Of a stretch of DNA of 64,000 nucleotides, positions 1 through 63,589 are shown one piece after another. The first letter of the stretch is position 1; every line of letters begins with the position of its first letter. The stretch comes from Octopus sinensis (taxonomy: Eukaryota), in the NCBI RefSeq assembly GCF_006345805.1, contig NC_042999.1:99076001-99140000 (forward strand), written 5' to 3'. The notes below the pieces were generated by a model. It was not told the origin of the DNA. It saw nothing but the letters and a program-made list of their open reading frames with translations, and made no database searches. A program made the position numbers and the translations under genes.

Positions 1-82
1 AATAAATATTAGGGAATAAATCCAAATTTACAGGGAAAAATCAGATTTATGATTGAATCCAATTTTATAGTAAAATATAATA

Positions 83-303
83 TAATATTAATTAGAGACA
101 AAACCACTATTATGCAAATCAAACAAAGAAAGACTTAATCCAATACATAAAAAATTTTATATAAATTAAATATAATTAAGATATCCACTACGATCGTTTC
201 TTGTCACTTCTATGGACATTCATCAGGTGGTTTCAAGACCTTCTATGCAATTTTGAACTATGTTTGATTTGCATAATAGTGGTTTTGTCTCTAATTAATA
301 TTA
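83..303. mobile_element. Foldback element with 43-bp perfect inverted repeats (83-125 / 261-303) enclosing a hammerhead; probably Penelope-derived
   Basis: taatattaattagagacaaaaccactattatgcaaatcaaaca and its exact reverse complement, followed by (AT)n. Confidence 0.7.
185..230 (-). ncRNA. Minimal type I hammerhead ribozyme motif
   Basis: Minus strand reads CCAC-CTGATGA-A-TGTC-catagaagt-GACA-A-GAAAC-GATC-GTA-GTGG. Stem I is CCAC/GTGG, stem II TGTC/GACA, helix III the palindrome ACGATCGT, with a GUA cleavage triplet. The base-of-stem-II pair is an A/A mismatch. Confidence 0.72.
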
Positions 304-351
304 TATATATATATATGTATATATATATGTATTAAATATCCATCACAGCTG

Positions 352-424
352 GTCTTACCAATCAGTTTTACGTAAAGAGTGTTAGGTAACAAACCAATTA
401 TATAACTTTACACTCATCAGAGTT
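352..424 (-). ncRNA. Decayed hammerhead ribozyme motif
   Basis: Minus strand reads AACT-CTGATGA-GTGTAAAG...CTTTACGT-AAAAC-TGATTG-GTA-AGAC. Stem II still pairs, GAAA has become AAAA, and stem I is mostly lost. Confidence 0.5.
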
Positions 425-704
425 GGCTGATATGGAAGCGAATATAGTGACTGCTCTCTATTGTCAGAAGTGGATTAGCACAGCCAGCCAGCATTTGCTG
501 AGAATGTGGTGTGTGGTATGTCTTGTGGTGTCATATGTATAATTTTTTCTGGAGGTGTAGGTATATATAGCTGTGTTCATTTGTCTGTTTACTTTCTGTA
601 AAGGATAAAGATGTGCTGTGGGGGAGGTTATGTTACATATATGTATATGTACATTATCATCATCATCATCATTTAATGCCTGTTTTCCCTATTTTTCCCT
701 ATTT

Positions 705-760
705 GTCTCTGATGATGGAATATCCCATACTCTGGGATATCCTAGAAACAGCTGTAAGAC
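705..760 (+). ncRNA. Minimal type I hammerhead ribozyme motif, core intact
   Basis: GTCT-CTGATGA-TGGAATATCCCA-tactc-TGGGATATCCTA-GAAAC-AGCT-GTA-AGAC. Stem I is GTCT/AGAC, stem II has an 8-bp perfect core ATATCCCA/TGGGATAT, helix III is the palindrome ACAGCTGT, with predicted cleavage after GUA at 756. Confidence 0.82.
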
Positions 761-984
761 TGAATTTTTTCCAATAATAATAATGTATATGACTTGAGAC
801 GTTTGCCTTGCCTTAATGTTTGTTGTCCTCTTTAAAAATTATACATCTGCTGCAATGGAAAGCTACAATGGCTCCATAACTACCATCTCGTCTATAACCT
901 TGGAGCCCTAGTAATCTGTTACATAATTGGTTAGATCACCTGTGAACTAAACGCCCATACTTTGTATATATATACATATATATA

Positions 985-1227
985 GGTCCAGGAGTGGCTG
1001 GGTGGTAAGTAGCTTGCTAACTAACCACATGGTTCCGGGTTCAGTCCCACTGCGTGGCATCTTGGGCAAATCAGAACGTAAAATATTTTTAATTAAATAC
1101 AATATGGTCAATGAGGTAACGGTTGTACCAATCCATCAGTCTTATTTACATATTCTGCTATAGCCCCGGGCCGACCAATGCCTTGTGAGTGGATTTGGTA
1201 GACGGAAACTGAAAGAAGCCTGTCGTA

Positions 1228-1271
<44 letters not shown>

Positions 1272-1478
1272 TGTGTGTCTGTGTTTGTCTCCTAACATTG
1301 CTTGACAACCAATGCTGGTGTGTTTACATCCCCGTAACTTAGCAGTTCAGCAAAAGAGACCGATAGAATAAGTACTGGGCTGACAAAGAATAAGTCCCGG
1401 GGTCGATTTGCTCGACTAAAGGCGGTGCTCCAGCATGGCCGCAGTCAAATGACTGAAACAAGTAAAAGAGAATAAAAA

Positions 1479-1480
<2 letters not shown>
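985..1480 (+). mobile_element. tRNA-derived SINE with internal (AT)n and an ~85-nt foreign insert
   Basis: A-box-like TGGCTGGGTGG and B-box-like GGTTCAGTCCC; the body and tail (gcagtcaaatgactgaaacaagtaaaagag) recur across the window. Confidence 0.85.
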
Positions 1481-1544
<64 letters not shown>

Positions 1545-4374
1545 TATGTGTGTGTGTGTATTTATGTATGTATATATGTATGTAAAAAGAGGTCCTTCTC
1601 AATCCATAGTTGCAGCAGCCTAGTTTCATGGTTTCTTTGGTGTATACATTCACTATGGTGAATATATACATGACACACACTCACTCACAGTGTGTGGGCG
1701 TGCATATGAATGTGTGTGTCTGTGTAAGGTGCCAAGTAATGGTGCTAAAGCAGCTGATGGATTGAGTCTACCACCCAAATAGGCCAGGGTAGGATTTGAA
1801 CTCAGAATGCAATGAGCTGGCGTAAATACAACAATCATCAAGTTTGATGTTCATACAGTATTACAAGCCCACTTCCTCTAGATTGATATTCTTTTTATCG
1901 GTCCTAAAGGAATGAAAAGAGAAGTTGAACTCAGAGCACTGCATACCAGAACAAATACTGTGACATATCTTTACAACATTCTAACATCTCTTCCACTATG
2001 CTGCCCAAATAAAAATAAGATTTTGATTATGTATTTGGAAATGGTTGTTTTCTAAGCTATAGCTTACACTGAGCCATTAAAGTTTAGTGCTATTTTGCTT
2101 TTTTTTCTTCTACTTCTTTTCATAACCTTTTCTTCATTGACATGACACCTGATACTAGACAAAAATATACAGTTGTAACATCTTACAAATAAATAACAGC
2201 AATGATTATAATATATTGTATCCAATTATAATTGTGGTTGTAAGATGGTAGGGAGTCATAATTACTAAAATAACTTCTCAGAAATTTAGTCATAAAAATT
2301 GCTGTTATCTTCCTACAAGGTTGTAAATATTGTTGCCTCTAACATTTTTGACACGACGCTTATGGATGTAGTATTCTACAAATTCAGATCTACAATAAAA
2401 TCTTTGGTTATAATTCCTTGCTAATTATTTAGTCATAATCACAACCTAATCATGTTGTCAAAATTATAAGCTGATTTTGTAGTCATAATTGCTAGCTAAT
2501 TATTTATAACTTTTTAATCTTGTAGTATTAATACCACAGCAATATTAATATTAATAACTATTTATTACTAGTTAATCCACTTCTTACAATTACTAGCTAA
2601 TCAGTTAGCCAGAGTTACTAGCAAATTGTTTTCCAGCTGCAATGGACAACATATGATTCACAATCCAATTCTAAATTTTGTAGAATTAGCAAGCTGTGAA
2701 ATAAAACATCCTTTCAATATTGCAAGTAGCTTTTCTGGCAGGGAATATTGAACTCTAGGTCAACAATCTACACTGCTTTTCTGCTTACAGCAGCCAACCA
2801 CCCTGCCCTGCAATAACTATATACATATCGATGAACTGTTGCTGTTTGATCACAAGTCATCATAAGTGAGATGACTGGTGATCAAAGGCAATCTAGTCAT
2901 GGCCATCACATCTTTCTTCCTAATATATGTTATCTAGAATTGTATATATATATATATAAATATATATACCAATTTGAAAATAAATGTGGTTTATGGTATG
3001 TATCTTTATGTCTTATAACTTAGCAGGTCAACAAATAAGAACAATAAAATCATTGTCAGGCTTGAATATGTACTCAGATTGATTTTATTACAAAATATGA
3101 GAACAATAACCAGTACTGTGGCAGTTCAGTGACTGAAACCAATAAGAGAAAAGTAAAGAATAATCTCTTTAACATCAATATTTCCACTGATTTTTCCTTC
3201 ATTTTCACCATGACCATCACCACCACAACCACCACCACCACCACCACCATCATCGTCGTTGTCATCATCATCATCACTTTCATCATTATCACCATAATCC
3301 CTACCACCATCACAAAAGTAATTTTTTTATCTTTTGCAGTACTTCTTTCTATGTTTACTGTTATGTCATTCTGAAAAAGAATTCTCTTTCTATATCTGCT
3401 CTGTTATTATAATGTTGATGCAATACTATAGATTACTGGTTAAAATTTCCACATTACAATGGAATTACTGAGCTATTCAGCTATCACTTTGATGTTCATA
3501 ATTACTCATAACAAACTGACCCATGATACTTGTAGTTCTGTCATATTTGATAATCTTCTCAGTGCTGTCTTGTATCCCAGACCAGATTGATTCTAAGTCA
3601 CCAATTGAATCTAGAGATCATTTAGCATCTCCTTGGTAGTTGGTCAATAAAATGGAAATTAACAAGCTTATTATCTTTCAGACTATTACCCTCATCTTTG
3701 TGGGTTTTTAAAAAAAATTATTTCATACCAGTTAGTATACTGATTTGACTATGCCTGCCATGTTCTCTGGTCTTTTTGAAAAGTTTTTGTACAATCCTAA
3801 ATTAGAAGAGGTTTCTAGTATTCTAACTCAAGCCAATTTCTAATTTGTGGAGGAAAAGGACACAATGATTGACCCAGTTTTCAACAGTGTGCATGACCAA
3901 TTCTTGAAAAGGAGAAAAGGGAGGGGGTGAGAGAGAATAGAGAGAGGGTGGGGAGAGAGGTAGAAGGAGGGAAGAGGAAGAGAAATAAATAGAAAGACAA
4001 ACTGAGTAGACTCAACCCACTAATTGATTGGTTCATTGTCAACTCTAGAAAAAGGAGAGGCAAAGTAGATCTTGCCATGATCTGAACTCAGAATACAAAG
4101 AGCTGGAACAAAGCCCTCTCGATATTTTGTCTGATAATTCTAATGATTCTACCAAATGACCAGCTTAACTTCATCTTCAGAGATAGTAAAAATGTTAATG
4201 ATTACATCCATCTACTCTACATTTCAAATTGTAGGATCATTATTTGTTATCAAATATCTCATTTCTGGAGTGTGGGGTATGCATTGTATTAGAGTGGAAT
4301 TGGAATTAACAACCTTTATTTCTAAACTAAGAGTAATAATGTTTAGGCCACAGATGCATGTAGTTCAAAATCCA

Positions 4375-5070
4375 GTCTAAGTGGTTAAGAAATTCACTTA
4401 ACAGCCACATGGTTTCAGATTTAGTCCCAGACCACAACATCTTGGGCAAGTAACTGGGCAAGGTTGACCAATACTTTGTAAGAGAATTTAGTGGACAGAA
4501 ACTGTGTGGAAGCCTGTTTGAAACTGTGTGAAAGGCGGCTAGCTGGCAGAAATGTTAGCACGGCGGGCAAAATTCATAGCGTTATTTCATCTGCCGTTTC
4601 ATCTGAGTTCAAATTCCGCCGAGGTCGACATTGCTTTCATCTCTTTGGGGTCAATAAATTAAGTACCAGTTACACACTGGGGTCGATGTAATCGATTTAA
4701 TCCCTTTGTCTGTCCTTGTTTGTCCCCTCTATGTTTAGCTCCTTGTGGGCAGTAAAGAAATAAGAAACTGTGTGGAAGCCTGCTGTATATGCATGTGTGT
4801 GTGAGTGTGTGTCTGTTTGTCTGTCTGTGTCTGCATTTGTTCCTTGCCACCACACTTTGGCTGCTGATGTTGGTTTGTTTACATCCCTGTAACTGAGCAG
4901 TTCAGCAATTGAGACTGAAAGAATAAGTGCTATACTTAAAAAGAACAAGAAGCACTATGGTCAATTTATTTGACTAAAACACTTCAAGGCGATATCCCAG
5001 CATGATGACAGTCCATGTTGGGACACTAAGCTAGTGTCCCAGCATGTTGACAGTCCAATAATTAAAAGAA
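4375..5070 (+). mobile_element. SINE interrupted by a second SINE family (4533-4763)
   Basis: The host SINE head and tail flank an insert bounded by the 19-bp direct repeat gaaactgtgtggaagcctg (4498-4516 / 4764-4782). Confidence 0.8.
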
Positions 5071-9443: not shown

Positions 9444-10922
9444 CTGTTGTTATTGTTGTCAGTGGCAGCGTTGTTGGTGTCATTGGTGTCGGCGTTGGCG
9501 TCATCAGCATTGGCATCAAACAAAATATTTTGTAGTATTTGTTCAGACTCTTTATAATTTGAGTTCATATCCTGCTGTTATCAACTTTTCTTTTTGTCCT
9601 CCTGAGGTTAATAAAATAAAGTATCAGACAAGTACTTGGGTTGATATAATCAACTGTCCCCTTTGCTCAAAATTGTTATCCTTATAGCTGTTAGAGATTA
9701 CTACTGTTATTTTTCTCTTAGAGAAGTGCAGTACAAGAAACAGTAGTGTTCTATCTGAAATTCTCTGAAAACTAATACATTCAGCTAAGGAGGTTTATAT
9801 GTAAAGTTCTCCCTCAGCAATAAATAACCCTTATAACAAAGAACCAGCTTAAGTGCCTGTATGTGGTTGCTTGACTTCTTGTAAATATTAGCCAAATCTA
9901 TTTCAAGTTACACCATACTATCTTGAAATAGGAGGTACACATTGAGTGATGTTGTATGAAATACTTAATGACTAAGTGAAGAAAGGTGTGATCATATCTG
10001 GAACTTTTAGGACAAGAGGGCTTACCTGGAGCTAAACAGTAACAATGACCCTTACAACAAAATATCCACCTTAAAGACCATTACTGTCTTTTCTCTCTTC
10101 TCATCTACATTAAAATAGATGGTCTTGATTACAGTTAGATTATGAAAACTTATTTAATTGTCTAAATATCTAAATGATCAAGGCTTTGTTTAAGGCTAAG
10201 TTTGTAATGTTGTTACCATGTTTACTGCAATAAATGATGTTACAATTGAAGTCTAATTAGTCAATTCTTGTATGGGAAAGCTGTTTCAGAATGGAAAACA
10301 ATAAATAAATAAGTATACACATATGGTGTACACATCAACACACACACACAGGCACAAGGTAAGTGAGACACTAAGCAGCCACTCAAATTGCTGGAAATAG
10401 CAGCCATATTTCCCTCAAACCAGACTTTGCTGTCTTAAACAAAATTAAGAACATAGTTGACAATGTAGGCTCACAGTGGGGATGCATTTAATCATTGGTC
10501 AATTCCTTCTGGAATAATGGGCTAAAGAAAAGCATCAACTGCATGTAACTTTACCAGTAACAGCACACTTACCTTAATTCTTCTCTCAAACCTCATCTAT
10601 ATGTATAGCATTAAAAATCTTTGGCACACATGCTTTCTTCTATGAAGGATGTAACATTACAGTTTAATCTAACAGTACAAATACACAGAATTTACACACC
10701 ATGTGTACCTATGTTACGCACTTTACCCATGTGTAATATGCAGTAAAAGCCATTCTTTTATTTAAACAGCTAGACATCATTAATTCTGATGGCTTCCTGT
10801 GGTGACCATATACCTAATATACTAAGTTGCAGCACAGAGGTTATGTTTGCTTTTCAGGAATGGAAACAACTATTTTTAAAAGTTCATGTAAATCCAATGA
10901 GAGAACTTCTACATTTTGACAG

Positions 10923-11889: not shown

Positions 11890-12080
11890 TACTTTAAGGC
11901 TTCATAACTCACACAATGAGCCAATGAGGGTGCTACTTCCACTCATGCACTGTCATCACTCATATTATGTCCACCCTTTACACTTCACACTAACCATTGT
12001 TTCAAATCCTTTCTCCTCAGAATATATTTTCTGGAATCCTTGCCTGCTTAGGTTTTTCCTGTGGCTAATAACTTGATATT
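11890..12080 (+). mobile_element. CR1/jockey-like LINE 3' fragment
   Basis: Frameshifted remnant of the FLPRT..LWNSLP..VFP..NNL C-terminus (ctttctcctcagaatatatttctggaatccttgcctgcttaggtttttcctgtggctaataacttg). Confidence 0.45.
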
Positions 12081-21715: not shown

Positions 21716-24700
21716 GTAAGTTCTCTTTTGTTTCAAGTCATAACTTCAGAATATATATACTCAAAAATTCTTAAAAGTATTTCCCACCTTGAGATCTAGA
21801 ACTCATCAACTGCATAGAGTTTAGATATTCTTTTCATAAATTTGACTTGATCTTTACAAATTAGCATATCCAACAAATATATATAATGAACATAATTAAC
21901 CCCAACCCCAAAGAAAAGTAAATAAAATAACGAAAAAAAATTAGTAGCAAAGTCAGTTACTGACTTATTTTCATTTTGGGATGGATGAGAAGGGAAATAG
22001 GGGAGAAAACTTCAAACCTGCTTTGGTGTTATTTTAACCTCATCAGCAAAGCCTTGCTGAAACAGTAAAGAAAGAAACACTAAGTAAATTGGCTGATGAA
22101 GGAAAATAGAATTCTTTAAATATACTAATACCAAATTAACTATTGTTTTTCTAGCAGATGGATCAAATAATTACAAGAAGTTTTGCTAACATTCTTATTA
22201 TTTCACTATTGTAAGAGATTAGGTCAACTATTTATTTAACCATTTATTTAAAAGGTTCAGTTGAAAATCTAAAAGTGTCAGTTGAAAATCAGACAGTCAA
22301 TGTAATTATTAAGTTTGAAAAAATATGCATGGCACTCATAACATTAATTGGTCTTGTAAAACTGGGATGGTAGATATAACAGATGGTCTACACAAAAATA
22401 TGGATGCTGAATCTCCATAACAAAAATGTAAGGATAAAAAGAGTCCTACAGAACTGTGGTTTGGGGGAGAAAGATTTGAGTGAAGTGTTTTGAAGAAGGT
22501 ACTGATGCTGTTTAAAGTGAGATCAACCTTGATTCAAATTATGTATTACTAAAGGTATTTCAGCTGTGTGAATATGCATAGTCTGGTAGTTAGAATATTT
22601 AGCGCATAATTTTAAGGTCTTAGGATCAATTCCTTGAGCAGAAAGCAGATTGTGTTCTTGAACAAAGCTATTTAATTTACTGCATGTACGCACACACAGA
22701 CTCACACACACTCTGTGACTCTAAGTGTGTTTGTGTGTGTGAGTGCATGCCTATGCGTGTACATTGGTAGATTGGAGGGTTTCATTTATTTACAACTTGA
22801 TTTCTTAATTTCACTAGAGTATAAATACCTATAATGGTGACACTTATAAAAAAAAATGAATTCAGTTCAATTAAAAAGCATGGGTAAGTAACGCATTTTA
22901 AGCCACACTATAATTTGTGAAAAAATGTATCTGCGCACAGGATATGCATCACCCTTTCCATGCCCTTTTTTTCATTATTATTGATTTGACTCAGGTTCAT
23001 TCTTATTCCTGGTAGATTTTATATTGGTAGCAGGTTACTACCTATAACCTTAGGTATACAAAATCTTTCACTAGTCTTTCAAGTGCTGAAAACCCTCCTG
23101 ACAATACTTCCTGTGCCTAAGAGGCAAACTTTCTTTAGAAGCTCTACAGGACATTCTATTCCAATCTCTGTCAACCATTTTTCTATATCTTTAGTCTCAG
23201 TTCTCAGTGCAATAATTATTACAGACACAACTGTTACAATTTTCGTTCTCCAAATTCTTGCAATTTCAAAATTTTAAGGAATTGTATTATTATTTTAAGG
23301 GATTATATCATATTTATTATTATTAATATTACATTCACACATCCATTACAAATAGATGCAAAGCACTCATACATAGAAATCAATTGGAGTGACACACCTC
23401 CTCTTCATCACCATCATAATCATCATCATCATCATCATCATCATTATTGAGATCAGTCATTAATTTAATATTATCAGTTAGTTTACCTGATTATGGAACT
23501 TTGATATAGTTACTGTGTCTAGAATTCTGTTACTAGAATTCAAAACTAAATATTCCTATAATCTTTCCCTCCTATCTTAAGCAACAGCAATGAATAACAA
23601 CACTTAAAACTATGGCAAGTAATAATATAAAAATAAGCGTCACCATAATAATTTAACATCAATACTGAAACAGTTGTGTGTGAATCTGTGTGTGTGTATG
23701 AGTAAAAACAGTGTCATTAATAACATTGTACAAGAAATCAATGATGACAATAGATTTATATATAAATGGTGGGGCTAGGGTAACCCCCAAAATTTCCTTC
23801 ATTTATTTAAAATTATTTGTATTTGAAATGTTATCATAATAGTTGATATTCTTTCATTGAATAATTTCAATTACTGTACCTCATGATGAAGTCTTGATAT
23901 ACTTATCCAAACTACTAGAGACTGCAACTAATTCATCCTCCTCTTTTAAATGACAATGAATAACAGCCACAAAGTATTTTAAACCTCCTCATACAGTCAT
24001 ACTCCCTCATTTCCAATTAATAATAACACAATAATAACTCACTAACGATTCCACTTACACAGTAACACTAAAAGTAATTCTTAATTGCAAGCAAAATATA
24101 ACACCTTTGTCAAACAATGGCTAGAACAACAATGTGAAAGAGACCAGCAACAATAACAACAGACACAAAGATGCATGTGTGGTATTTTAATGTAGACCAG
24201 AAGTAACAAAGCAGTGAATAGACATCAAGATAGAAACAGGAAGTAGACACCACAGTGAATAAGAGTTTGTTGCTTGATTTTAGTGAAAATGGTTGTTGAT
24301 GAAGTATTAAAAATACACCATAAAAAGTTATATTTTTATGAAAATATATTAAGACTGGAATTACTAAGACTATTCATTTGAATAGGAAGGCTGCTTGGGG
24401 AAAGTTTACAGAGATATAAATACTAATTGCCTCTTATTCCGCTGTAATATAGATAATACTTTGACAATTTTTGACAGAAGTTATATTTTCTAATTTTTTC
24501 AGTTCTTCCTTGCATTATATTATATAATGTATAATGTGTTTAGCTTCTGGCTGTTCCTCTTAGACATACCACCATGTTTATGTAGACATCTGATATTTCA
24601 AAAGTAGGTAAATTCTCAATTTTGGATTTTTGGATATATATTATAGTGATTTTATTGTTTCTATATGCACAAACATACATATTTTAAACTATTGAAATTA

Positions 24701-25765: not shown

Positions 25766-28289
25766 TATATATAACCTGTAAGTGGAACAGTATAAACACA
25801 GAAACCTTTTCTCAAGTTCAACATGTAACATTGCTTTCTTTTTTTTATCGACATTCCAATGATAGAACATTGAATCTTTGCTAGAAACCAGCTATTTTTA
25901 ATAATTTGAGGTCTTTCTGTAAGAATTTGTAACAGTAAGACCTCAAATAATTAAGAGAACAAACATGCATTCAATAAGTTGTACAGAGAAAATTTGTAAA
26001 AAAAGTTCAGATATTCTCTATTTAAGGATCCTGGATCAAACCTGTTCACTCAATCACATGAACATGTAGAAAACAAACCCAGACACACTCATGCATATAT
26101 AACCAATAATGAAGTATACACATATGTATATTAAAGTGACATGCATACTCACGACATGAGTAGAAGTTTATCCAAATGTGTGCACACACCAACCAATTCA
26201 AATCTTCACAGTGCTCCAAGAGCTATCTTGATTTAAATAAAAGAGCTTTGTCACTTTGTTAATAACTGGTTTGAATTCTGCAAAACATATACATATGCAT
26301 ACATATATACATACATGAATGAATAAATGATAAGCTTTCAGTTTCCATTTAGTTTTCATTTATTACACTCTACTGACAAAGTATTGGTCCATCTGAAGTA
26401 AAACCAAAAGACATTTTCCCAATGTACTTCACAGTGGAATCACACAGTTGCAAAATGAACTTCTTAACCACTCTGACATGCCTATATATTATATTAAATC
26501 TACAATGAGCTAAAGTCCATAAGGGAAAGGCATTCAGAAAGATACTTGTTAGTCACCAACATTCTGCTCTAATACCTAGCAGGGTCTATTGTTGAGGAAT
26601 CAAGTAAATATGTCAACTTCAATAAATAATTTATGTTATTCATCATCATCATCATCTTTTAATGTCCATTGTCCATGCTGGCATACATTGGATGGTTTGA
26701 CCAGGGCTGGCAATCTGGAAGGCTGCACCAGAATCTGGGCAAGCAGTGTGAAAGGAGAGAGAGTATGATGTGAGAAACAGAGTAATAGGTGTGAAGAAAT
26801 GTGAGAGGAGGATGTAATGAATGAGAGTCTATATGTTGATGGTTGGTTAAGAGAGTGAATAGAAAAATAGCATGAGTGGCATTATGATCAAAGAAAAAGT
26901 GAGAGAGAGAGAGAGAGAGAGAGCACAGTTAGACGGCAGAGGGAGTAATGGAAGTGAGATACAGTTAAGGAAGGTAGAGAGTGAGAAAGAATGATAGGAG
27001 AAAGACTGAGAGAGCAGTATATGGCAAGTAGAATAGAAAGGAGTAATATTGGAGACAGTGAGAGATAGTGTACAGGTGATAGTAGAGAACCAGTGCCACC
27101 CTAGGCACTAGTCATACACACACACACATCATCATTTTAATCTACATTTTATTCTGGTGTGGGTTGGATGAGTTGTCATTGTTTGAATCTTTTCTTAATG
27201 GAAGTTCCTGCTCTCATATACTGGTGTCTGAATGTGTTATTTTGGTTTGGTTTCTGTGTCTGGATACACTTCCTATTATCAACCACTTTACAAAGTGTAT
27301 TGGGTATATTTTGTCAACCCTCCCTTACGTTTCCTTGCTCACTAATCATTCTAGATGTGCATTGATGTCATAAGAATTTTATAAACTTTTGAGAGAACAT
27401 GATATAATTCTTTCTTTGGATCAGTGAATCTTGAAGCATACCTAAACCTATGAATAATATTTACATATCATTTATAACTTTATGTGCTTTGAGATCCACA
27501 ATTTCTAAAAAGATAGACAAATATATGTACACACATACACCTGGTTTTTCTCAGTTACCTTTATTACCCCCACTCAGTTACTTTCTTCCCCCCCCCCCGC
27601 CTACAAACTCTACCATTCACCTCCTTTGTGTGCCTTCTCCTATCTGTGCTTTCTCTCCCCCTCCTGTGCTGCTTTACATCATCAACTCCTTACATATCTG
27701 ATATCACCCTCAATGCCCTCACATAATTGCTGCAAACCCTGCCTCCTGAGTCTCTTCTGTATTTCTCTCCATCATTTGGTACAGTTATCCCATCTTGCTC
27801 ACTCACCCAGCCCAAGTCTCCATATCACCTTACCTATTCTCACCAGCCCCAATGTCCTTCGAGGGCTTGTCTCAAAATATCTTTACCATCATCTCTCTCA
27901 CTATCAGTCTCTTTATTTTACTCTGCAACTTGCTTTCCTTTATTTTCTAACTGGAGTATCCATGCAGCTACTCTACTGCAAGACATCTGTTTCTGTCCTG
28001 CTATACCTTAATCCATTCATTTGGCACAAAGCCACACACCCTCAAAACTACCCTGCTCCCAGCTAGGGGGTTCTGTTTTGCTAGGTACTTGCTGTTGGGG
28101 TTAGTGCCACATAAAAAGTACCCAGTACACTCTGCATCCAACTCATGCAAGCAGGGAAAACTGATGTTAAATGATGGTGGAGATGAATGATGATATATTG
28201 GCCCACCTTTTCTCTCTCCCGCTCATTCTCTCTCTCTATGTATATGTGTATATATATATATATACTTTCATAGGGGGGAAAGAGAGAGA

Positions 28290-36379: not shown

Positions 36380-36962
36380 TCAGCAAGTAAAGCAAGATCA
36401 CATCCATAACCTACACCAGTGTCACATAACCAACCCATTTAAAAAGTACCTTTGAATCATCGGGTGACATTCCATGCTTGTGGAGAGTTACTGAGTCAAG
36501 TAAAATAAAAAATAAAAATCGAAATGAAATCAAATCACAGTCAAACGGAAATTGCAGTTGTGGCCAATGCTAGTGCTGCCTGACTGGTGGCATGCAATAA
36601 GCACCCTACATGCGTGGGTCATTGCCAGTGCTGCCTGACTGGCTCCTCATGCTGGTAGCTCATAAAAAGCACCATCTGAATTTGGTCAATGCCAGCCCCC
36701 CCCCCACCTGACTGATTCCTGTGCCAGTAGCACGTAAAAGGCACCATCAGAATGTAGCTGATCGAGTACCACCTGACTGGCTCCTGTGCTGGTGGCATGT
36801 ATAAAGCAGCCACTACACTCTCGGAGTGGTTTGCATTAGGAAGGGCATCCAGCTGTAAGAATACTGCCAGATCAGACTGGAGCCTGGCTTGCCAGTGCCC
36901 AGACAAACCGTCCAACCCATGCTAGCATGGAAAACGGACGTTAGGCTATGATGATGATGATG
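36380..36962 (+). mobile_element. SINE of the (GAT)n-tailed family
   Basis: Ends ccaacccatgctagcatggaaaacggacgtta...gatgatgatg; related copies at about 17700-17940, 51560-51890, 59650-60075 (minus), 60385-60580 and 61990-62170. Confidence 0.75.
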
Positions 36963-37011
36963 GTATATATATATGTATATGTGTGTGTGTATATATATAT
37001 GTATATATGTG

Positions 37012-38869: not shown

Positions 38870-39507
38870 GAAATAATAAAATTGCCATTGGCTTCAACCA
38901 TGGCCTCCAGATAACTTTACAATTTCCTGCAATTCTTCTGGATTGTCTCCTTGTTTAAGTTGGTGAATACTGCCATAATCCTTGCCTTCAGTTCATCTTT
39001 GGTGTTACAAGGAGTTTTGTTGGTCTCTTGCTCAACTGCACCCCACACATAATAATCAAGGGGGTTGCAGTCTGGAGAGTTAGGTGGCCAGATGTTAGGA
39101 GTGATGTGGTCACAGAAATTGTCAGACAGTCATGACTGGGTTCTCCTGCTTGTGTGGTATGGTGCAGAGTCCTCTTGCCAGATATAGGGTGTTTCAGCAG
39201 CCACTCTGTTGACCCAGGGCAGCATTGCCTCCTCCAGGCACTTGATGTAGGCTGGAGGCATAGTGTTGCCATCACTAGTGATCACTCCAAACACCATGAT
39301 GTTGACTGAATGTTTGATTTTTATCACTCTCGCTACATGTTTTGGGTACATGATAAACCAACGGTTGTTCTGTGGGTTCACCAGCCTCATAGCATGCTTT
39401 TCATCTTGTCCTTGATGGCTTGGGATAAAAATTGGCCCTTTCTCATCTTGTATGAGGAATACTGAATGTCTTCATGCACTACCTGCCTGATAAGAAACTC
39501 AGACACT

Positions 39508-39538
<31 letters not shown>

Positions 39539-39960
39539 TTTAACTTCCATGTCCCTGGCAATGGATCTGAGTGACTTGGAGGGATTGTTTTCAATCATGG
39601 CCTGGATCTCATCAACAAATTCAGGAGTTCTTTTCTTATGAGAATGATCAGAGTGAGTTTTCCGAACCACTATACCTTTATAATCACCATTAGACACATC
39701 CAACTATTTCTGAATCCTCTGCAATGTCCTCAGGTTGACGCCCAAATACTCTGAGATGTTTGTATTGGAGCTTCTGATGTGAATGCCAAGCAGTACAGCA
39801 TGTCGTTTCCAAATTTCTAGCAGAGTGAATTGCTTCATGGTGCTATTTTTCTCACAGAGGGTGTCCAAATCACTGTACTATACTGTGTAGTTGATAAAAT
39901 CAAAAACAAACAACGTGCATGTACAAAATTAAAAATATAAAATGGTGACAGTTTACCCAT
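38870..39960 (-). mobile_element. Fossil maT (DD37D) Tc1/mariner-superfamily transposon
   Basis: Minus strand reads MVFGVITSDG...WQEDSAPYHTSRRTQS*LSDNFCDHITPNIWPPNSPDCNPLDYYVWGAVE, with 37 residues between the second and third catalytic Asp. An N-terminal remnant lies at about 39650-39850; stops and deletions are present. Confidence 0.82.
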
Positions 39961-42029: not shown

Positions 42030-42740
42030 ACATTAGATTATGGCTGAGAGGTAAACAGCATAGTCAAAGCAGCTGCTCTCATCTTCCACCACAGCCACAA
42101 GACAGCTCTGGAGCCTGGTACATGCGATCCTCACTGTGTCCCTGGGAAGATCTCTGAACACTTCCTTGATCTTGGCCACTAGCTTAGCCTTGGTGTTGCA
42201 GGCAGAGCAGTTGATGTCTTTGTCAACCATGCTACCCCTATAGTAATCCATGAGGTTACTATGCAACCAGAAATTTGGGTTGGTGAAGTCATAGAAATTT
42301 TCTGACAACCACTTCTGACTCTTTCATATGGCCATCCAGCAGCAACCCTCTTGAACCAGGGTTTGGCTACAGTCTCCAGAAGTTTTACATAGCAGTCAGA
42401 ATTGAGCCTAAGACCTTATTCATCTGCTATTGGATATATTCCAGCATGCGGATGCAGACAGAATATTTGCTGCATCCCTTCCTGCTGGTCATGGCTTCAT
42501 AGTCTCCACTGTAATTGTCCTTGTCATATCTTACAACATTTACAGTATTCACAGAGCATTGAGCTACAGTCATGTTGTCAGTATTTTGATACCTAGTACA
42601 TCATCGTAATACAAATAACTCTTTTCCAATATTCCAGTCTTCTATGTCAGTTAATATTTTCTCAACTATAACTTTAGTCTTTATGCTCTCCAGTACAATT
42701 GACTGTTCACAGCACATCGACCTGTTCCTGAAAAAGGAAG
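42030..42740 (-). mobile_element. Second, internally deleted maT-like transposase remnant
   Basis: Minus strand has LNSDCYVKLLETVAKPWFKRVAAG, SENFYDFTNPNFW...MDYY and TKAKLVAKIKEVFRDLPRDTVRIACTRL, plus an N-terminal remnant GDYEAMTSRK...CIR. Confidence 0.68.
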
Positions 42741-42933: not shown

Positions 42934-43415
42934 TAAGTATGGAAAACAATTAAATTTTGGAGAAATTAAATGGAAAGTATTTTGAAAGAGCATTTGCATA
43001 GTATTCAAATACAAGGGGCATTTTCCTTGTTTCTACCTGTTTCTGTCTCTCTTGTTTACTCTTGTGGGTTTGAGGTCGTTGGGAATTCTTGGCAGAGGAG
43101 AAGAGGAAGAAGAAGAAGAAGAAGAAGAAGAAGAAGAAGGAAATAATGCAGAAGTGCTCTTCTTCTCTTCCTCCTTCTTCTTCTTCTTCTTCTTCTTCTT
43201 CTTCTTCTTCTTCTTCTTCTTCTTCTTCTTCTACTTCTTCTTCTTCCTCTTCTCTGCCAAGAATTCCCAACGACCTCAAACCCACAAGAGTAAACAAGAG
43301 AGACAGAGACAGGTAGAAACAAGGAAAATGCCCCTTGTATTTGAATACTATGCAAATGCTCTTTCAAAATACTTTCCATTTAATTTCTCCAAAATTTAAT
43401 TGTTTTCCATACTTA

Positions 43416-43851: not shown

Positions 43852-43913
43852 ATTGAGAGTCTTAAACAAAAGCTTGAGAAACGAAGAGTAAAAATTTCCA
43901 AAGTTGCTGAAAG
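43852..43913 (+). CDS. RGS7: RGS exon, GGL domain N-terminal part (IESLKQKLEKRRVKISKVAE-S)
   Basis: tttcattttag|ATT...GAAAG|gtatgt; 62 nt, phase 0-2; resembles RGS7 IKYWQIQLDRHRLKMSKVADS. Confidence 0.95.
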
Positions 43914-44188: not shown

Positions 44189-45457
44189 TCAGATCATCCT
44201 ATAAGTTCTGTCCAAATTTTGAATAAAGAAAGCAAGTGATCAAATGTTATATTTAATTGAAATTTAATCATCAATGTACTTTCGCTGATTATCTATGACT
44301 TCCTTCCATCTATTTACAAGCTTTTAAATCCCATCAATGTAAAACTCTTTTGGTTTCAAAGCGAAGAGCTCTGAAATGTCAGTTTCTACATCCTCCTAGC
44401 TTGCAAAAATTATGTCCCCCAAATGATCCTGTAAACTATGAAACAAATGGTAGTTTGAAGGAACAAAGTCAGCAGAATAAGGAGGGTGAGGAATTTTTTC
44501 CCAGCCAAGCTCTTCAATCTTCTATGATGTGATATTTGCAGTGTGGGGTTGCGCATTGTCCTGATGAAACATCACTCCTTTTCGATTCACTAAAGCAGGT
44601 CTTCTTTTCTTCAAAGCTTAGTTCAAATGCTCTAATAGTTGACAGTAGACTTGAGCATTGATTGTTGCATTAGGTAGTAACAATTCAAAGTGAGTTACTC
44701 CTTTGGAATCCCACTAGATAGAGAGAAGAACCTTTTTCCCATGAAGTTCCCTTCTCGGTTGTGGTTGAGCTTTTTTGCCTTTTACCAAGCCACTGTTTAA
44801 GACATTTAATATTTTTATATAAGATCCATTTTTCATCACCTGTCACAAGTCTATCCAAAAGGGGTGAAATGAGTTTGCGAGAATGGAGAGAAGAGCAGAT
44901 GTCAACTCGAGATTTGTGGTTGCTCTTGGACAATTCATGAGGCACCCATTTTCCAAGTTTAGAAACTTTTCCAAGTTGTTGAAGATGACGATGAACAGTT
45001 GTATGGTTTGGACTAAGCTTTATTGCCAATTCTTCAACTGATAATGCAGGATTTTCGTCAAGTAATGCTTCAAGGAGCTTATCTTAAAACTTAACTGGAC
45101 GTCCTGTTCGATCTTCATCTTCAAGGCTGAAATCTCCACTTCTGAATTTTGCAAACCATCTTCTGCAAGTTCTTTCATTCAAACATTCTTTCCCATAAAC
45201 TGAATGTATGTTTTGAGTTGCTTCGGCTGCAGAGTTTCCTTATGTGCCTTAAATGCTCTTTGGATACTTCCATGTTAGAAAGGGTTTTAATCAAAGAAAT
45301 TTTAATTCTATTATTCTGTAAAATAATATCTAATTAGTTTAAATGTACACAAATGCATAAAAATAATTCTTAATTTCATTAGATATTCTAAAGTACTATT
45401 AAATTTCATTCAATTTTAAAAAAGGTAAAATCAGACAGAACTTATGGGATGACCTGA
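44189..45457 (-). mobile_element. Full-length fossil mariner (DD34D) element, 1269 bp
   Basis: 24-bp terminal inverted repeats (44189-44212 / 45434-45457) match 22 of 24, with TA duplicated at both ends. Transposase motifs WVPHEL, VTGDEKW, HQDNAQPH and YSADFVPSNY are present; the frame is disrupted. Confidence 0.92.
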
Positions 45458-50570: not shown

Positions 50571-52049
50571 CATCATATACATACTTTCCAAATTGCTGTC
50601 AATTTTATTCAGAGTTACTCCCCTCCTAGATGGGCTGCAGGACCACATTTCATTTGTACATTTCAGTTTGGGTTTGGTTTTTTTCTGTTGGATGCCATTC
50701 CTATCACCAGCCATTGTACAAAAGGTACTGGGTGCATTTTATTGTAGAAATTGTACTAGACAGATTGTTATGTCATCTACAAGACTAAAGGGTTTGATCA
50801 ACAACACAACTAATACATGTTGTGAAGTGGTGGGCATTTGTCAAGCACTTTACAAAGTATGCCTGTAAAGTGGGGTTGTCTTGCACCTCCTTAAATTAAA
50901 GAGTTCCCACTAATTTAGGATTTGTTTATTCACTTAGGGCTACATTACAGAGAAGGAAAGATAATAGAAATGCGAGTAAAGGAGTAAAAGTATGATGGGA
51001 GAGAGAGAGAGAGAGAGAAATTAGGGTGACATGGATGAAAGGGACAGACAGTGATGGATACTACTGAAGATAGTCACTTGTGGGTGTCAATAACAAGTGG
51101 TTGTACAGAGAAAGGGTCATGGAAGTGTGTACTGGATATAAGCAGGTCTGAGAGAATGCCTTGTACACAGGTTTAGGGGTAAGAATGATGCTATATAGGG
51201 TAAAGGGATTGAAATATGGATAAGTTTAGTACTATCCCTTGTTACACAAACTGCATTTGTCAACCCAGAACTATAGTAGGAGGCATTTACTCATGGTGCT
51301 ACACAGTGTGGTTATACCCACAACCACTTGGTCACAAAGCAAACATCTTCATGATACAGCCATGCTTGTGCTATATTAGAAAGGATTTTCTATTTGTGCA
51401 AACGATGTCATAAGTTCAAGAACCATTTTAAGCTGCATCCACAATAGGTAACAAGAAAGGCAGGCACTAGAAAATATCTATGTAACTTTATATTTAGTTG
51501 AAAAATATTCTATTTTAAGAAGAAAAGATGACTGCTTTATATCAACACTTTGGTTTCTATTGTAAGCTGAAATCTCTTGTATATGTATGCACACATACAT
51601 ACATTATACATAAAAAGCACCTGTCCCAGTGCAATGCAAATGCACCCATACTGGTGCAACACAAAATGCACCTAAGCCAGTGCCATGTAAGACCACTTAT
51701 GTCAGTTGTATGTAAAAAGCACCAGTACACTCTGTAAAGTGATTTGTATTTGGAAGGGAAACCAGTCATAGAAACCGTGTCAAAACACACAATTGGAGTC
51801 TAGGCTGCTCTCCAGCTGACAAGCTGCTGTCAAACCATTCAACCCATGCCAGCATGGAAAACAGATATTAAATGATGATGATGATGATGATATATATATA
51901 TATAAATCAAAAATAAAACCATTTGGTAATACTGAATTTATATATATTCTTTGCTTGGATTGTATCAATAGGCTTGGATGTTTGACATTCCTTTGGTAAA
52001 TATATTGTTGCTATGATTTAACTTATTTCTTTTATTTTGGTATTTTCAG

Positions 52050-52163
52050 CTTCATTGCTTACTGTGAACAATATGCAGAATTTGATGCCTTCAGCACAAC
52101 CCCTGAACCATCGAATCCTTGGATCTCTGATAATATAGAATTCTGGGAGCAGGAAAAAACTGT
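52050..52163 (+). CDS. RGS7: RGS exon, GGL domain C-terminal part ([37 protein letters not shown])
   Basis: tattttcag|C...ACTGT|gtatgt; 114 nt, phase 2-2; contains the GGL hallmark SNPW. Confidence 0.97.
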
Positions 52164-55334: not shown

Positions 55335-55466
55335 AAATCCCAAAGACATTCCACCACGGCGTGTGAAACGGTGGGGTTTTACTATTGAAGAGGTTCTCAC
55401 TGACCAGGCTGGAGTTGAACAGTTTAGTAAGTTCCTTGATAAGGAATTCAGTGGAGAAAATCTTAA
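55335..55466 (+). CDS. RGS7: RGS exon, start of RGS domain (NPKDIPPRRVKRWGF...KFLDKEFSGENL)
   Basis: tatttgcag|A...CTTAA|gtaagc; 132 nt, phase 2-2; RVKRW and EFSxENL motifs. Confidence 0.97.
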
Positions 55467-55789: not shown

Positions 55790-56830
55790 ATCCTACCCAT
55801 ATGCAGCTAGATGAATTGAGCAGCTGTAAATAACTATTGTTCCAATGATGGTATACAACTGAAGGAGGTCACTGACTTCAAAAACCTTGGCTTCTATGTT
55901 GCTGACCATATGAAAGACTTCCTGATACACAAGGTAAAGACATGAAGTGGCTATAACAAACTTCAAACCATCATGCAATTATTAAGTTACTTAATTTCAA
56001 TGAAGCTGGATTTATACAGGTTATGTAGAGAGAATTCTCCTCTATAGAAATAAAACTTTGGCAATAAAAAAGAACATATTTTTCATCTTTAATCTTTTAC
56101 TTGTTTCAGTCATTTGACTGCAGCCATTCTGGAGCATCACCTTGAATGAAGGGTTTTAGTCAAACAAATCAACCCCAGGATATTTTTTTATTTTAAAGCC
56201 TGATACTTATTCTAACAGTGTCTTTTGGCGAACTGCTAAGCTATGAGAATGCAAACACACCAACATTGGTTGTCAAGTGGTGGTGGGGATGCAGAAACCG
56301 ACACAATGACACACACACTAAGATACATACATTTATATGTTTGTATATATGTGTATATGTTTCTGTCTACCTAATCTACTCACAAGGCTTTGGAAGGCCC
56401 AAGTCTATAGCAGAAGACACTTGCCCAAGGTGCCATGCAATGGGACTGAACCCAGAACTATGTAGTTTGGAAGCAAGCTTCTTACTACACAGCCACACCT
56501 GTGCAGCTGTGTAGTATACCAAACTTTTCATAACTTCATATGATATGGACACAGGATTAAAGAGAAGATTTATTGTTTCATTCTATCCATCTCTACTATT
56601 GTTGCTCAATACAGAGTAGGTTTTACTGGTTACTATTATTGTACCGAACATCAGGCAATATTGGATGTTATATTTTGGTGAATTCTACAACCCAATAGAG
56701 GATGAAGACCATTCAACTACTACGTTGATGGTTTTTTGCAAAGATACACAACATTAACCTGAGGAAGTACCAAAGCTAGGTTGAAGCAGAAATCCTTGGT
56801 GCAATGTTATAAAATACATCTCAGTTGGAG
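55790..56830 (+). mobile_element. RTE-type LINE fragment split by a minus-strand SINE (about 56085-56504)
   Basis: Left part reads GIQLKEVTDFKNLGFYVAD...KDFLIHKVKT*SGYNKL; right part reads IVAQYRVGFTGY...LDVIFW. These are collinear parts of an RTE ORF2. Confidence 0.65.
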
Positions 56831-57525: not shown

Positions 57526-57600
57526 ATTTTGGTTAGCATGTAAAGATCTGAGAGGATTATCCCTGAGAGAAGTAAACACCAGAGTTCTAGATATATATAA
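57526..57600 (+). CDS. RGS7: RGS exon, RGS domain (FWLACKDLRGLSLREVNTRVLDIY)
   Basis: tttttttctttccag|A...TATAA|gtaagt; 75 nt, phase 2-2; FWLA motif. Confidence 0.97.
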
Positions 57601-60116: not shown

Positions 60117-62708
60117 TGCATACATAAATGCATACATATAAGGAGCTTTGAACCGAGGTAGTACGTTTAGTGTCTGGCAGTTGCATCTTGCCAGTAATAG
60201 GTGTACAGGCCTCAATTCTGCCAATTCACCAAAGACAGTAGAAGACTGAGAAGTGGCAAAATCTGGTTGTGTCATCATCAACAAATGCTCCAGTGACCAA
60301 ACAGTCAAGGCACACAAAGGAAGGATACACACACACATGTATGCATATACAACTTGCCCCAACCCAGTTTACATATACCAAATTTCATTCACTGTCACAT
60401 AAAAAGCACCCACTACACTCATGGAGTGGTTGGTGTTAGGAAGGGCATCCAACTGTAGAAACACTGCCAGATCAGACTGGAGCCTGGCGCAGCCTCCTGG
60501 CTTCCCAGACCACGGTGGAACCATCCAACCCATGCTAGCATGGAAAACAGATGTTAAACGATGATGATGATGATGATGATGCCTTAGGCTATTGCCAAAG
60601 ACACTTACTCAAGATACCACAAAGAGATGGAACCCATAACCATATAGATATGAAGTGAAATCCAAAACCACACAGCCTTGCCTGAACTTGTATAGTCACA
60701 AATTTCAGTCATTAATATTTCATGTCCTTGCTTTCTGCCACATTCAGCAGTGTTTGTGTTGTAGCTGAAATTATCATAATTTGTTTTAGGTTTGTGTTGA
60801 TACATAGATACTATAGCCCATTCTTGGAGATGCACTTGCAGTACTCTAAAGAAAGCAATTGAATGATAACAAAAAAAATTTAGTAATTTAATATCAAATA
60901 TTAGCTTCTCTTAAATTATGCAGGATACTAGAAATGCAATAACATTTATCAAACTACTTTTTAAAGTAGGTCTGTAGTTTACTTTTCTCTCATTGCACTA
61001 AAACACAAATATTTTGATTAAAGAGCTTCACACTCAGAAATTTTGTCAAATTTTTTTATTTCAGTTATTTATTCTAAAATGGAAGGGCCTTGTTGTTTTT
61101 AACTTCTTACACTCGGTGGATCAGGATAAATAGATGAATTTATGAATTCTTACTTCTGATTACCAATTTTACATCTATTTTGAAAAGTGATGGAAATTAG
61201 CTTTGAAAACCTCATGTCTACTAAATCTGGAATTAAGAGCTGTATGAGAGCTGTGAAAGAGTTTAGTTCAGATGGAAGCCATCTGGTACAGGTTAGACAC
61301 ATTTAATTAGCAGAAACTTGGCAAAGTTAAAGCAAATTTGCATCATATTATAAAAAAAGTAAACAAAAACTTAGCAACAAATTTGTATATTAAGAATTAG
61401 CTATATATCACTTACCAAGCTTTCTCTTTCCTAATGAATCCTTTTGGTGTTGTAAATTCTAAAGTGTATATATGTGCATGTTTGTTTGTATATTTCAGTG
61501 TATATGTGTGTGGGTTTTAAGTTAGGCAATCATACTTAAGATGATAAGCCAAAAATAATTTTTAATCAGCTGAAATTTTAATTGTAATGGGAATAGTCAT
61601 TAGTATTAATGAAAATTACTTTCAAAAGAGGTAAGGGAGATAACTCAGCAGACCAAACATTAAATGGAGATCTGTAGGGGATGGGTGAAACTTATGTTTG
61701 GTAGCTATGGGAATGACTCCACACATATTTCAGTCTTATTAGAGCTTGCTAGCAAAGCTTATTCCAAACAAAACTACCAAGACCTCTGAAAGACTAATGT
61801 ATATAGCATGTTTATGCATGGACAGTGTAAAAAATTTAAAAGAAAGAAACAAAACCAACAAATAAGGGTCAAATTTGTGGGTTGCATTGTAAACAAGTAC
61901 AAAAATGAAATCCCTGTTAAAGCTAAAGTATCATCAATAGTATGTCTGCAACATTTAATAACTAATGTCTAATAACACCAGCTATAAAAATCATGCCAAA
62001 ACAGACCTTGCTGGTGCTTGTGCCACGTAAAAAAGCACCCAGTCCACTCTGTAAAAGTCAAGCCAAAACATACAGTAGAGCTCGGTACAGTCCTCTGGCT
62101 TGCCAGTTCCTATCAAACTGTCCAGTCCAAGCCAGCATGGAAAACGGATGTTAAATGATGATGATAATGATATCAGATATGGTTGTGTGGTTACAAATTC
62201 ACTTTTAGCCACATAGTTTGGGGTTCAGTGACAATATGCAGCACCTAGAAAAAATATCTTCTACTCTAGCCACAGGCTAATCAATGATCATATAATTCAT
62301 ATTAGTCATATTGGTAGATGGAAACTGTGTGGAAGCCTGTCATCCTCATCATCACCATCATTGTTTTACTGTCCACAATCCCAGGCTTGCATGGATCAGA
62401 TTAAATTCATTGAAGCAAATTATCTATGGCTGGATGTCCTTCCTGTTGCCAACACTCACCTGTTTCGAAGCAAGGTAAATATTTACCCCATGACCAAGCA
62501 CATTTTCATGGAAGATTGAAAAAGAATGCCACTACCTGTGATGGTGTCATACATACATTCATGCATGCACACACACACACACACAACACACACATGCATA
62601 CATACATACATACACACACACATGCATACATACACACACAATTCTTTTTTGCAATTGTGGATCTTGAATCACACAAAGCTATATATTATAGCATGTAAAT
62701 AGTGGTAT

Positions 62709-63474: not shown

Positions 63475-63589
63475 AGAATTCCTTGCTCCTGGTTGTCATA
63501 ACCCAGTTAATGTGGATAGTACAATTGCTGAACTGGTAAGACGAAGAATAGAAAATAACCCTGATCGGTACTGCTTTGATGAAGCTCAG
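63475..63589 (+). CDS. RGS7: RGS exon, RGS domain (EFLAPGCHNPVNVDSTIAELVRRRIENNPDRYCFDEAQ)
   Basis: ttttctttcttacag|A...GCTCAG|gtatat; 115 nt, phase 2-0; EFLAPG, NVDS and FDEAQ motifs. Confidence 0.97.

Follow-up and report, generated by a model that had tools for sequence, protein, structure and literature searches.

Near the beginning of the 64,000-nucleotide stretch of DNA analysed here (the window), a 56-nt segment of the plus strand has the sequence layout of a hammerhead ribozyme. The initial annotation had described this segment (positions 705-760, here called motif A) as a fully intact hammerhead, sense to an RGS gene and probably within one of its introns, and had proposed that cleavage after position 756 during transcription could affect the integrity or splicing of the RGS pre-mRNA. 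The locus therefore raises the question of what motif A is and whether it is likely to cut. The observation on 705-760 was confirmed in our analysis, and its interpretation, taken as a whole, was partly supported.

Sequence and structure of motif A

When read directly, the plus strand at 705-760 gave GUCU CUGAUGA UGGAAUAUCCCAUACUCUGGGAUAUCCUA GAAA CAGCUGU A AGAC, which is a complete type-I hammerhead core with both ends lying in helix I. A structural descriptor that we wrote ourselves retrieved the motif exactly. The nucleotides that define the core were all found, i.e. C3 U4 G5 A6 N7 G8 A9, G12 A13 A14, the pair A15.1-U16.1 and an H17 that is not G. From the sequence read and the descriptor, the initial annotation was correct as to strand, position, core and helices, and as to where it predicted the cut. 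The parts of the motif are the following.

705-708, plus strand: 5' strand of helix I, GUCU, forming four Watson-Crick pairs with AGAC at 757-760
709-715, plus strand: core box CUGAUGA (C3-A9), exact consensus
716-744, plus strand: helix II hairpin, 11 pairs and one A.C mismatch, loop UACUC
745-747, plus strand: core G12 A13 A14, exact
748-755, plus strand: helix III, self-complementary octamer ACAGCUGU running from A15.1 to U16.1, as read from the sequence
756, plus strand: H17 (A756) in the triplet GUA, with the predicted scissile bond at 756/757 by hammerhead numbering
757-760, plus strand: 3' strand of helix I, AGAC, from the sequence read and the descriptor

Helix II is built from the pairs U716-A744, G717.U743 and G718-C742, an A719xC741 mismatch, and eight Watson-Crick pairs (720-727 with 733-740). 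At about 11-12 bp it is three times as long as the canonical helix II of 4 bp, and the hairpin on its own has a folding energy of -12.3 kcal/mol. The 10.1-11.1 position is occupied by U716-A744, and the conserved G-C pair that closes helix II is absent. Motif A also lacks a bulged nucleotide after A9 ahead of a G10.1-C11.1 pair, since U716 pairs with A744; if U716 were taken as a bulge, U743 and A744 would be left unpaired ahead of G12. Helix III can form at most 2 bp within one molecule (A748-U755 and C749-G754), capped by the tetraloop AGCU. The description of the motif as fully intact thus holds in that every core nucleotide is present; it fails at 10.1-11.1, which is U-A, and at the palindrome, which cannot give 4 bp intramolecularly.

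Beyond its 4 bp, helix I showed no convincing extension or loop 1 in the sequence, the descriptor or the folding, and no contact between loop 1 and loop 2 was found in motif A. Such contacts cannot form, since helix I has only 4 bp with neither loop 1 nor an extension, and helix II has three times the canonical length. Natural hammerheads owe their activity at cellular Mg2+ to such contacts (PMC6155905). Motif A in this respect resembles the minimal hammerheads of the laboratory, which have the core and three plain helices with no tertiary contacts; in both, cleavage would be expected to need high Mg2+ (PMC6155905). Unlike motif A, however, the laboratory versions have a designed stable helix III, the G10.1-C11.1 pair and no competing folds.

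The hammerhead fold is predicted to be disfavoured in the monomer

In a 66-nt context, the minimum free energy (MFE) of motif A was -17.0 kcal/mol as against -11.5 kcal/mol for the hammerhead-compatible fold, i.e. the latter lies 5.5 kcal/mol above the MFE by an energy model that leaves out tertiary contacts. The fraction of the ensemble in the hammerhead fold was 3e-5 in this context, and the 66-nt MFE structure pairs the core nucleotides C709-G711 with C749-G751. Although three helices can be drawn by the descriptor, they are not the favoured fold of motif A.

We observed that the hammerhead fraction fell to 3e-6 in a 131-nt context and to 5e-8 in a 191-nt context. This decrease arises since a (CAU)n tract upstream of the motif pairs with UGAUGAUG of the core. 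The tract is a perfect complement of this part of the core, and would be transcribed immediately ahead of motif A. In the MFE structure of 640-830 the two are paired, and positions 710-717 are engaged. The tract belongs to a repeat that we could follow elsewhere in the window.

654-672, plus strand: (CAU)n tract competing for the core box, at the head of the truncated SINE-like repeat 628-688
628-688, plus strand: SINE-like repeat, starting with (CAT)n and then TTTAACATCCGTTTTCCATGCTAGCATGGGTTGGA..., cut off after GTTTTCC at 688

Five further copies of the SINE-like repeat were found, all on the minus strand (51856-51916, 60542-60578, 36929-36982, 62139-62172 and 28153-28186), and the homology ends at 688.

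Folding of two copies together gave a different picture. The MFE structure of the homodimer is exactly a double hammerhead, in which a helix III of 8 bp joins the two molecules, at -40.7 kcal/mol as against -34.0 kcal/mol for two separate monomers (2 x -17.0). Among the folds computed (monomer and homodimer), it is only the homodimer of motif A that takes the active shape.

Motif A is rarely expected by chance and has a partial counterpart

Chance rates were estimated by simulating sequence of the window's composition as Markov chains (order 1, 3 or 5). The strict descriptor (helix I of at least 4 bp, CUGAUGA, helix II of at least 3 bp, GAAA, helix III of at least 2 bp, and UH) had an expectation of 0.013-0.05 matches per window, counting both strands. 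When the stretch A15.1-U16.1 was also required to be fully palindromic by Watson-Crick pairing, a trait published for dimer-type hammerheads, this became 0.002-0.006 per window; only six matches to the palindromic descriptor occurred in 180 Mb of simulated sequence, and in all six helix II was shorter than 4 bp. In the real window there were two palindromic matches, motif A and a second motif (motif B), and none in the other 63 kb or in the reversed window. A relaxed descriptor, for which 0.34 matches per window would be expected, also found A and B alone, and its count in the reversed window was zero.

At 0.006 per window, a Poisson model gives a probability of about 2e-5 for two palindromic matches in the same window, as seen here at a distance of 475 nt; this value is conditioned by a palindrome requirement that was introduced after A and B had already been seen. 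A 4-bp helix I, an 8-nt palindrome and GUA are common to the two motifs, and not all of these are demanded by the descriptor. Within a single window, motif A is far beyond chance, and it was itself picked from a scan of unspecified size. Extrapolation to a genome of Gb size gave a few coincidences as good as motif A, and hundreds that would pass the strict descriptor.

Motif B lies on the opposite strand, antisense to the RGS gene, within a MITE-like unit.

185-230, minus strand: motif B, hammerhead-like, CCAC/CUGAUGA/A-UGUC-CAUAGAAGU-GACA-A/GAAA/C-GAUC-G-U-A/GUGG
75-312, no strand assigned: MITE-like unit enclosing motif B, with 54-nt inverted arms (75-128 and 258-312) that are 96-98% identical, and a 129-nt spacer

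Read through, motif B is CCAC CUGAUGA AUGUCCAUAGAAGUGACAA GAAA CGAUCGU A GUGG. As in motif A, there is a 4-bp helix I, a palindromic 8-nt helix III (ACGAUCGU) and a GUA site, the palindrome being different from that of A. Helix II of motif B is merely 4 bp, with A.A at 10.1/11.1, and G10.1-C11.1 is absent here too. The flanks of A and B could not be aligned, no score exceeding those of shuffled controls, and nothing common to the two was found outside the core.

The MITE-like unit has TA-rich flanks, and its spacer is non-palindromic, the inner halves not being complementary. The palindrome of motif B, ACGATCGT (190-197), falls exactly at the symmetry centre of the unit (193.5), and we offer no explanation for this.

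Further copies and relatives of motif A

We looked for other copies of motif A by several routes. The 56-mer was unique in the 64-kb window at up to three mismatches, and neither blastn at word size 7 nor repeat finding gave a copy. When A and B were combined into a covariance model and this was run with filters off, no convincing further copy was detected in the window. By mismatch search, repeats, descriptors and covariance model, there was no second copy of A on the plus strand within the 64 kb. Tandem or dispersed copies of 690-780 were likewise not found in the 64 kb, and neither were head-to-tail repeats of the retrozyme type.

The covariance model and related scans listed a few weaker places. 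A segment at 22087-22136 (plus strand) scored 21.5 bits with the A and B model, having CUGAUGA and a 4-bp helix I but not GAAA, and is probably noise. The same probably applies to a weak hammerhead-like match at 56588-56660 (minus strand), which has two core changes, and to 11986-12026 (minus strand), which has a CUGAGGA core and AU/GU-rich helices. A third CUGAUGAG box at 411-418 (minus strand), in the region 335-418, was rejected; it is not a valid core, and its likeness to A was no better than that of shuffled sequences. This region (335-418, minus strand) contains a 6-bp GUAAAG/CUUUAC hairpin followed by GUAAAAC in place of GAAAC, with CAGCUGU nearby at about 341-347.

None of the Rfam hammerhead models (RF00163, RF00008, RF02275, RF02276 and RF02277) reached its gathering score in the 64 kb, although these models may miss minimal variants of the kind carried by Penelope-like elements (PLEs). 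At E<=10, 261-nt and 81-nt slices around A gave no Rfam hammerhead match either, HH9 and HH10 included. The scans at E<=10 returned only insignificant look-alikes of snoRNAs, MicF and miRNAs.

A mobile element that might have carried motif A was also sought at the protein level. Six-frame translation of 1-4950 contained no Penelope-like coding remnant and no Pfam domain of any kind. Orthologous or paralogous loci were sought as well: the joined ORFs of 390-935, used as a protein query, gave no relatives of the surroundings of A. Exact look-ups of two ORFs overlapping A and of one transposase-like ORF yielded nothing. A metagenome pattern scan gave 0 matches.

The host gene and the position of motif A

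To define the gene, exons on the plus strand were located by tblastn with homologues and by their AG/GT borders.

43852-43913, plus strand: R7-type RGS exon
52050-52163, plus strand: R7-type RGS exon
55335-55466, plus strand: R7-type RGS exon
57526-57600, plus strand: R7-type RGS exon
63475-63589, plus strand: R7-type RGS exon

The spliced product of these five exons matched Pfam GGL at 55.1 bits and RGS at 82.8 bits, and by this sequence evidence the host gene is of the R7 type; the RGS gene proposed in the initial annotation was thus borne out. The full-length proteins most similar to it have the architecture DEP-DHEX-GGL-RGS, and NCBI names one of these RGS7; for the RGS part the nearest named relative is from the gastropod Nucella lapillus.

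With about 100 R7-type homologues as queries, no DEP or DHEX exon was found in 1-43851. The N-terminal exons would therefore lie upstream of the window, which would place motif A on the sense strand of an intron longer than 43 kb. We consider it likely, from the architecture of the gene, that A is inside an RGS intron in the sense orientation, as had been anticipated from the expected upstream location of the DEP/DHEX exons. One candidate DHEX exon at 420-473 (plus strand, peptide ELADMEANIVTALYCQKW) was judged spurious, as its tblastn E value was 6.6 and it had no Pfam DHEX match. The peptide ELADMEANIVTALYCQKW is faintly like the DHEX stretch LELADYEAE..L..KW of R7 RGS proteins.

Related genomic sequence was reached around the RGS exons alone. 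A closer relative in Logan SRR11869391 has about 72% nucleotide identity in intron sequence there, and in a distant relative (ENA ERZ25073280, contig ctg52903_9x_l) only the exons are alignable. This contig carries the orthologues of exons 52050-52163 and 63475-63589 at 2700-2828 and 10082-10203, which are 7.4 kb apart as against 11.4 kb here.

Within the RGS introns, decayed DNA-transposon ORFs are seen at 38920-39877, 42036-42323 and 44688-45083 (all on the minus strand), among them a DDE_3-type transposase fragment with a score of 23.4 bits, below the cut-off, and a mariner-like HTH fragment (...LVTGDEKWILYKN). At 42950-43399 there are two near-identical 115-aa ORFs on opposite strands, with poly-E/poly-F runs and both beginning with MFTLVGLRSLGILGR; the pair indicates that sequence was duplicated in inverted orientation around a centre near 43175, a short way upstream of the GGL exon. 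The segment 28800-31250 is about 2.4 kb of degenerate low complexity of the (CA/TG)n type, with artefactual ORFs of up to 606 aa (THTHT...).

Comparison with known hammerheads

The closest parallels are the minimal hammerheads of PLEs, in which a helix I of 4-5 bp is combined with a large helix II and with a palindrome at 15.2-16.2/loop 3 (PMC4209133). They occur in the terminal repeats of these elements and as thousands of solitary copies in animal genomes (PMC4209133; review PMC6765202); most are single dispersed copies, with some pairs 100-700 bp apart on opposite strands (PMC4209133). Single motifs are without detectable activity, and the activity of dimers is low (PMC4209133). Motif A shares with them the type-I arrangement, a short helix I that lacks a defined loop 1, an over-long helix II, the lack of loop contacts, and a short palindromic helix III that is stable in the dimer alone. 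The trait of a second motif at 100-700 bp on the opposite strand is seen in motif B, which is itself imperfect.

The agreement is incomplete. Helix II in the PLE motifs is 6-8 bp, while that of A is 11-12 bp. Cervera and de la Pena gave four hallmarks that separate real minimal hammerheads from noise (PMC4209133), and two of the four are missing here: G10.1-C11.1 in both A and B and, in A, the nucleotide between A9 and 10.1. PLE motifs lie in a pseudo-LTR beside an RT/GIY-YIG ORF or belong to genome-wide consensus families with covariation, the latter being the decisive hallmark; for A, the search of 1-4950 gave no such ORF and that of the window no further copy, as would also be seen with the solitary motifs that make up most of those published. 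PLEs do occur in cephalopods and other molluscs, where Naiad PLEs have been recorded without canonical hammerheads (PMC8557442).

Non-LTR retrozymes and satellites of metazoans (newt and axolotl, Schistosoma Sm-alpha, coral and mussel; PMC7229834) have in common with A the core, a GUH site, a 1-2-bp helix III and a palindromic tetraloop. In invertebrates, type-I hammerheads typically have a helix III of 2 bp that ends in a palindromic tetraloop (PMC7229834), and the retrozyme-type hammerheads of amphibians are dimer-dependent as well, as the build of A would make it (PMC7229834). Unlike A, however, retrozymes are head-to-tail repeats of about 170-400 bp with a 6-bp helix I, a 4-bp helix II and conserved loop-loop contacts.

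The amniote hammerheads HH9 in RECK (RF02275) and HH10 in CTCL (RF02277) resemble A in being of type I and lie, as A probably does, in a sense-strand intron of a protein-coding gene. They differ in their stable helices, their conserved tertiary contacts and their ultraconservation across species, and A matches neither model.

Evaluation of the possible origins and activity of motif A

We put at about an even chance the reading that motif A is a solitary, minimal, dimer-dependent hammerhead-type motif that a mobile element left behind and that has no catalytic activity in the pre-mRNA of the RGS gene. A leftover of a Penelope-like or related non-autonomous element would have come to lie in the RGS intron, which is also its most likely location. 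Cleavage by motifs of this kind requires two copies joined by their palindromes as a double hammerhead, and is slow even then. With no partner on the same strand of the window and the core box sequestered by alternative pairings, A would not cleave and would have no role in RGS expression. The complete core, the rarity of the motif, the nearness of motif B, the PLE-like build and the homodimer fold favour an origin from a mobile element, which we regard as most likely; the missing hallmarks, the lack of a PLE remnant in 1-4950, of further copies in the window, of an Rfam match and of relatives of the flanks, the dissimilar flanks of A and B, the location of B in an unrelated MITE-like repeat, and the lack of canonical hammerheads in the Naiad PLEs of cephalopods weaken it. 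Motif A is most likely inert because it has no partner, no G10.1-C11.1 and no loop contact, and because its core box is sequestered.

A serious though less likely alternative is that motif A is a coincidence, in which a (TGA)n-like CUGAUGA box, the inverted repeat at 716-744, GAAA and a short palindrome happen to stand in hammerhead order in an AT-rich, repeat-rich intron, with no ribozyme history or function. Searches for minimal motifs yield mostly false positives (PMC6155905), and the genome-wide extrapolation from the strict descriptor (hundreds per Gb genome, few by its most demanding version) as well as the unspecified size of the original scan point the same way. So do the absence of G10.1-C11.1 in both motifs, the lack of a family, element or Rfam match, and a fold that disfavours the hammerhead. 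Coincidence does not readily account for two palindromic matches so close together (Poisson, with the descriptor tightened post hoc) and none elsewhere in the window or its reverse, nor for details common to A and B that are in part beyond what the descriptor demands. A box C/D snoRNA encoded in the intron, with a C box UGAUGA at 710-715 and a D box CUGA at 760-763, was considered in addition, since sense-strand introns are the usual home of animal snoRNAs and the sole Rfam matches in the region were to the C/D families SNORD50, snoZ159 and snoTBR7, aligned on both boxes. These matches scored 11.7-13.1 bits as against gathering scores of 39-45, with E values of 1.9-8.2 in searches of 81-261 nt. 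The boxes are not flanked by a terminal stem (U708-A764 is the sole possible pair), the distance of about 45 nt from C to D is filled by a 12-bp hairpin, and UGAUGA is preceded by C and not by a purine. We rejected the snoRNA reading of 709-763 on its insignificant Rfam scores and missing terminal stem, and its probability is very low.

An active hammerhead that cuts the nascent RGS pre-mRNA in cis after 756 and modulates its splicing or integrity, as proposed for RECK and CTCL, is improbable in our estimate. In its favour are the complete core with a GUA site, the sense orientation and probable intronic position, and the very stable helix II, which would form first in transcription. Amniotes have conserved intronic type-I hammerheads (PMC6155905), and among invertebrate retrozymes there are hammerheads whose monomers cleave efficiently with a helix III of 2 bp (PMC7229834). 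The active retrozyme monomers, however, need contacts between loops 1 and 2 in a build of 6-bp helix I and 4-bp helix II, whereas A has a 4-bp helix I without a loop 1 and a 12-bp helix II. Vertebrate introns are, moreover, depleted of hammerhead-bearing repeats (bioRxiv 10.64898/2026.07.22.740005). The folding results also speak against an active hammerhead, since the MFE structure is 5.5 kcal/mol more stable than the one required and the core is captured by the (CAU)n tract that precedes it, as do the lack of a dimer partner and of any match to HH9, HH10 or another Rfam hammerhead. A further point against it is U10.1-A11.1 in place of G-C: G10.1 contributes a metal-binding site, and lower activity is expected in its absence. 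Intronic ribozymes are not known to disturb mRNA production unless they cleave fast. The co-transcriptional cleavage proposed in the initial annotation is thus not supported, given the disfavoured fold and the missing partner copy, G10.1-C11.1 pair, loop contact and Rfam match.

We see a very slight chance that motif A is a domesticated hammerhead in the R7-type RGS intron of a mollusc, probably a cephalopod, that is conserved at this position in related species and that, aided by host factors, cleaves the nascent RNA in spite of its minimal build. If it were conserved and cleaving, gene-embedded hammerheads would extend to invertebrates, as a counterpart of those in amniote RECK and CTCL and within a gene of neuronal G-protein signalling, and one could test whether cleavage by a ribozyme is linked to how a very long neuronal intron is processed. 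If motif A is a relic or a coincidence, its importance is small, as thousands of minimal motifs are known in animal genomes, mostly solitary and barely active; at best, it adds one member to a known and very numerous kind of hammerhead. The lesson from this locus is that a perfect catalytic core is insufficient for calling a ribozyme, and that activity is decided by the pair at 10.1-11.1, by peripheral contacts, by folds that compete with the active one and by the presence of a partner copy.
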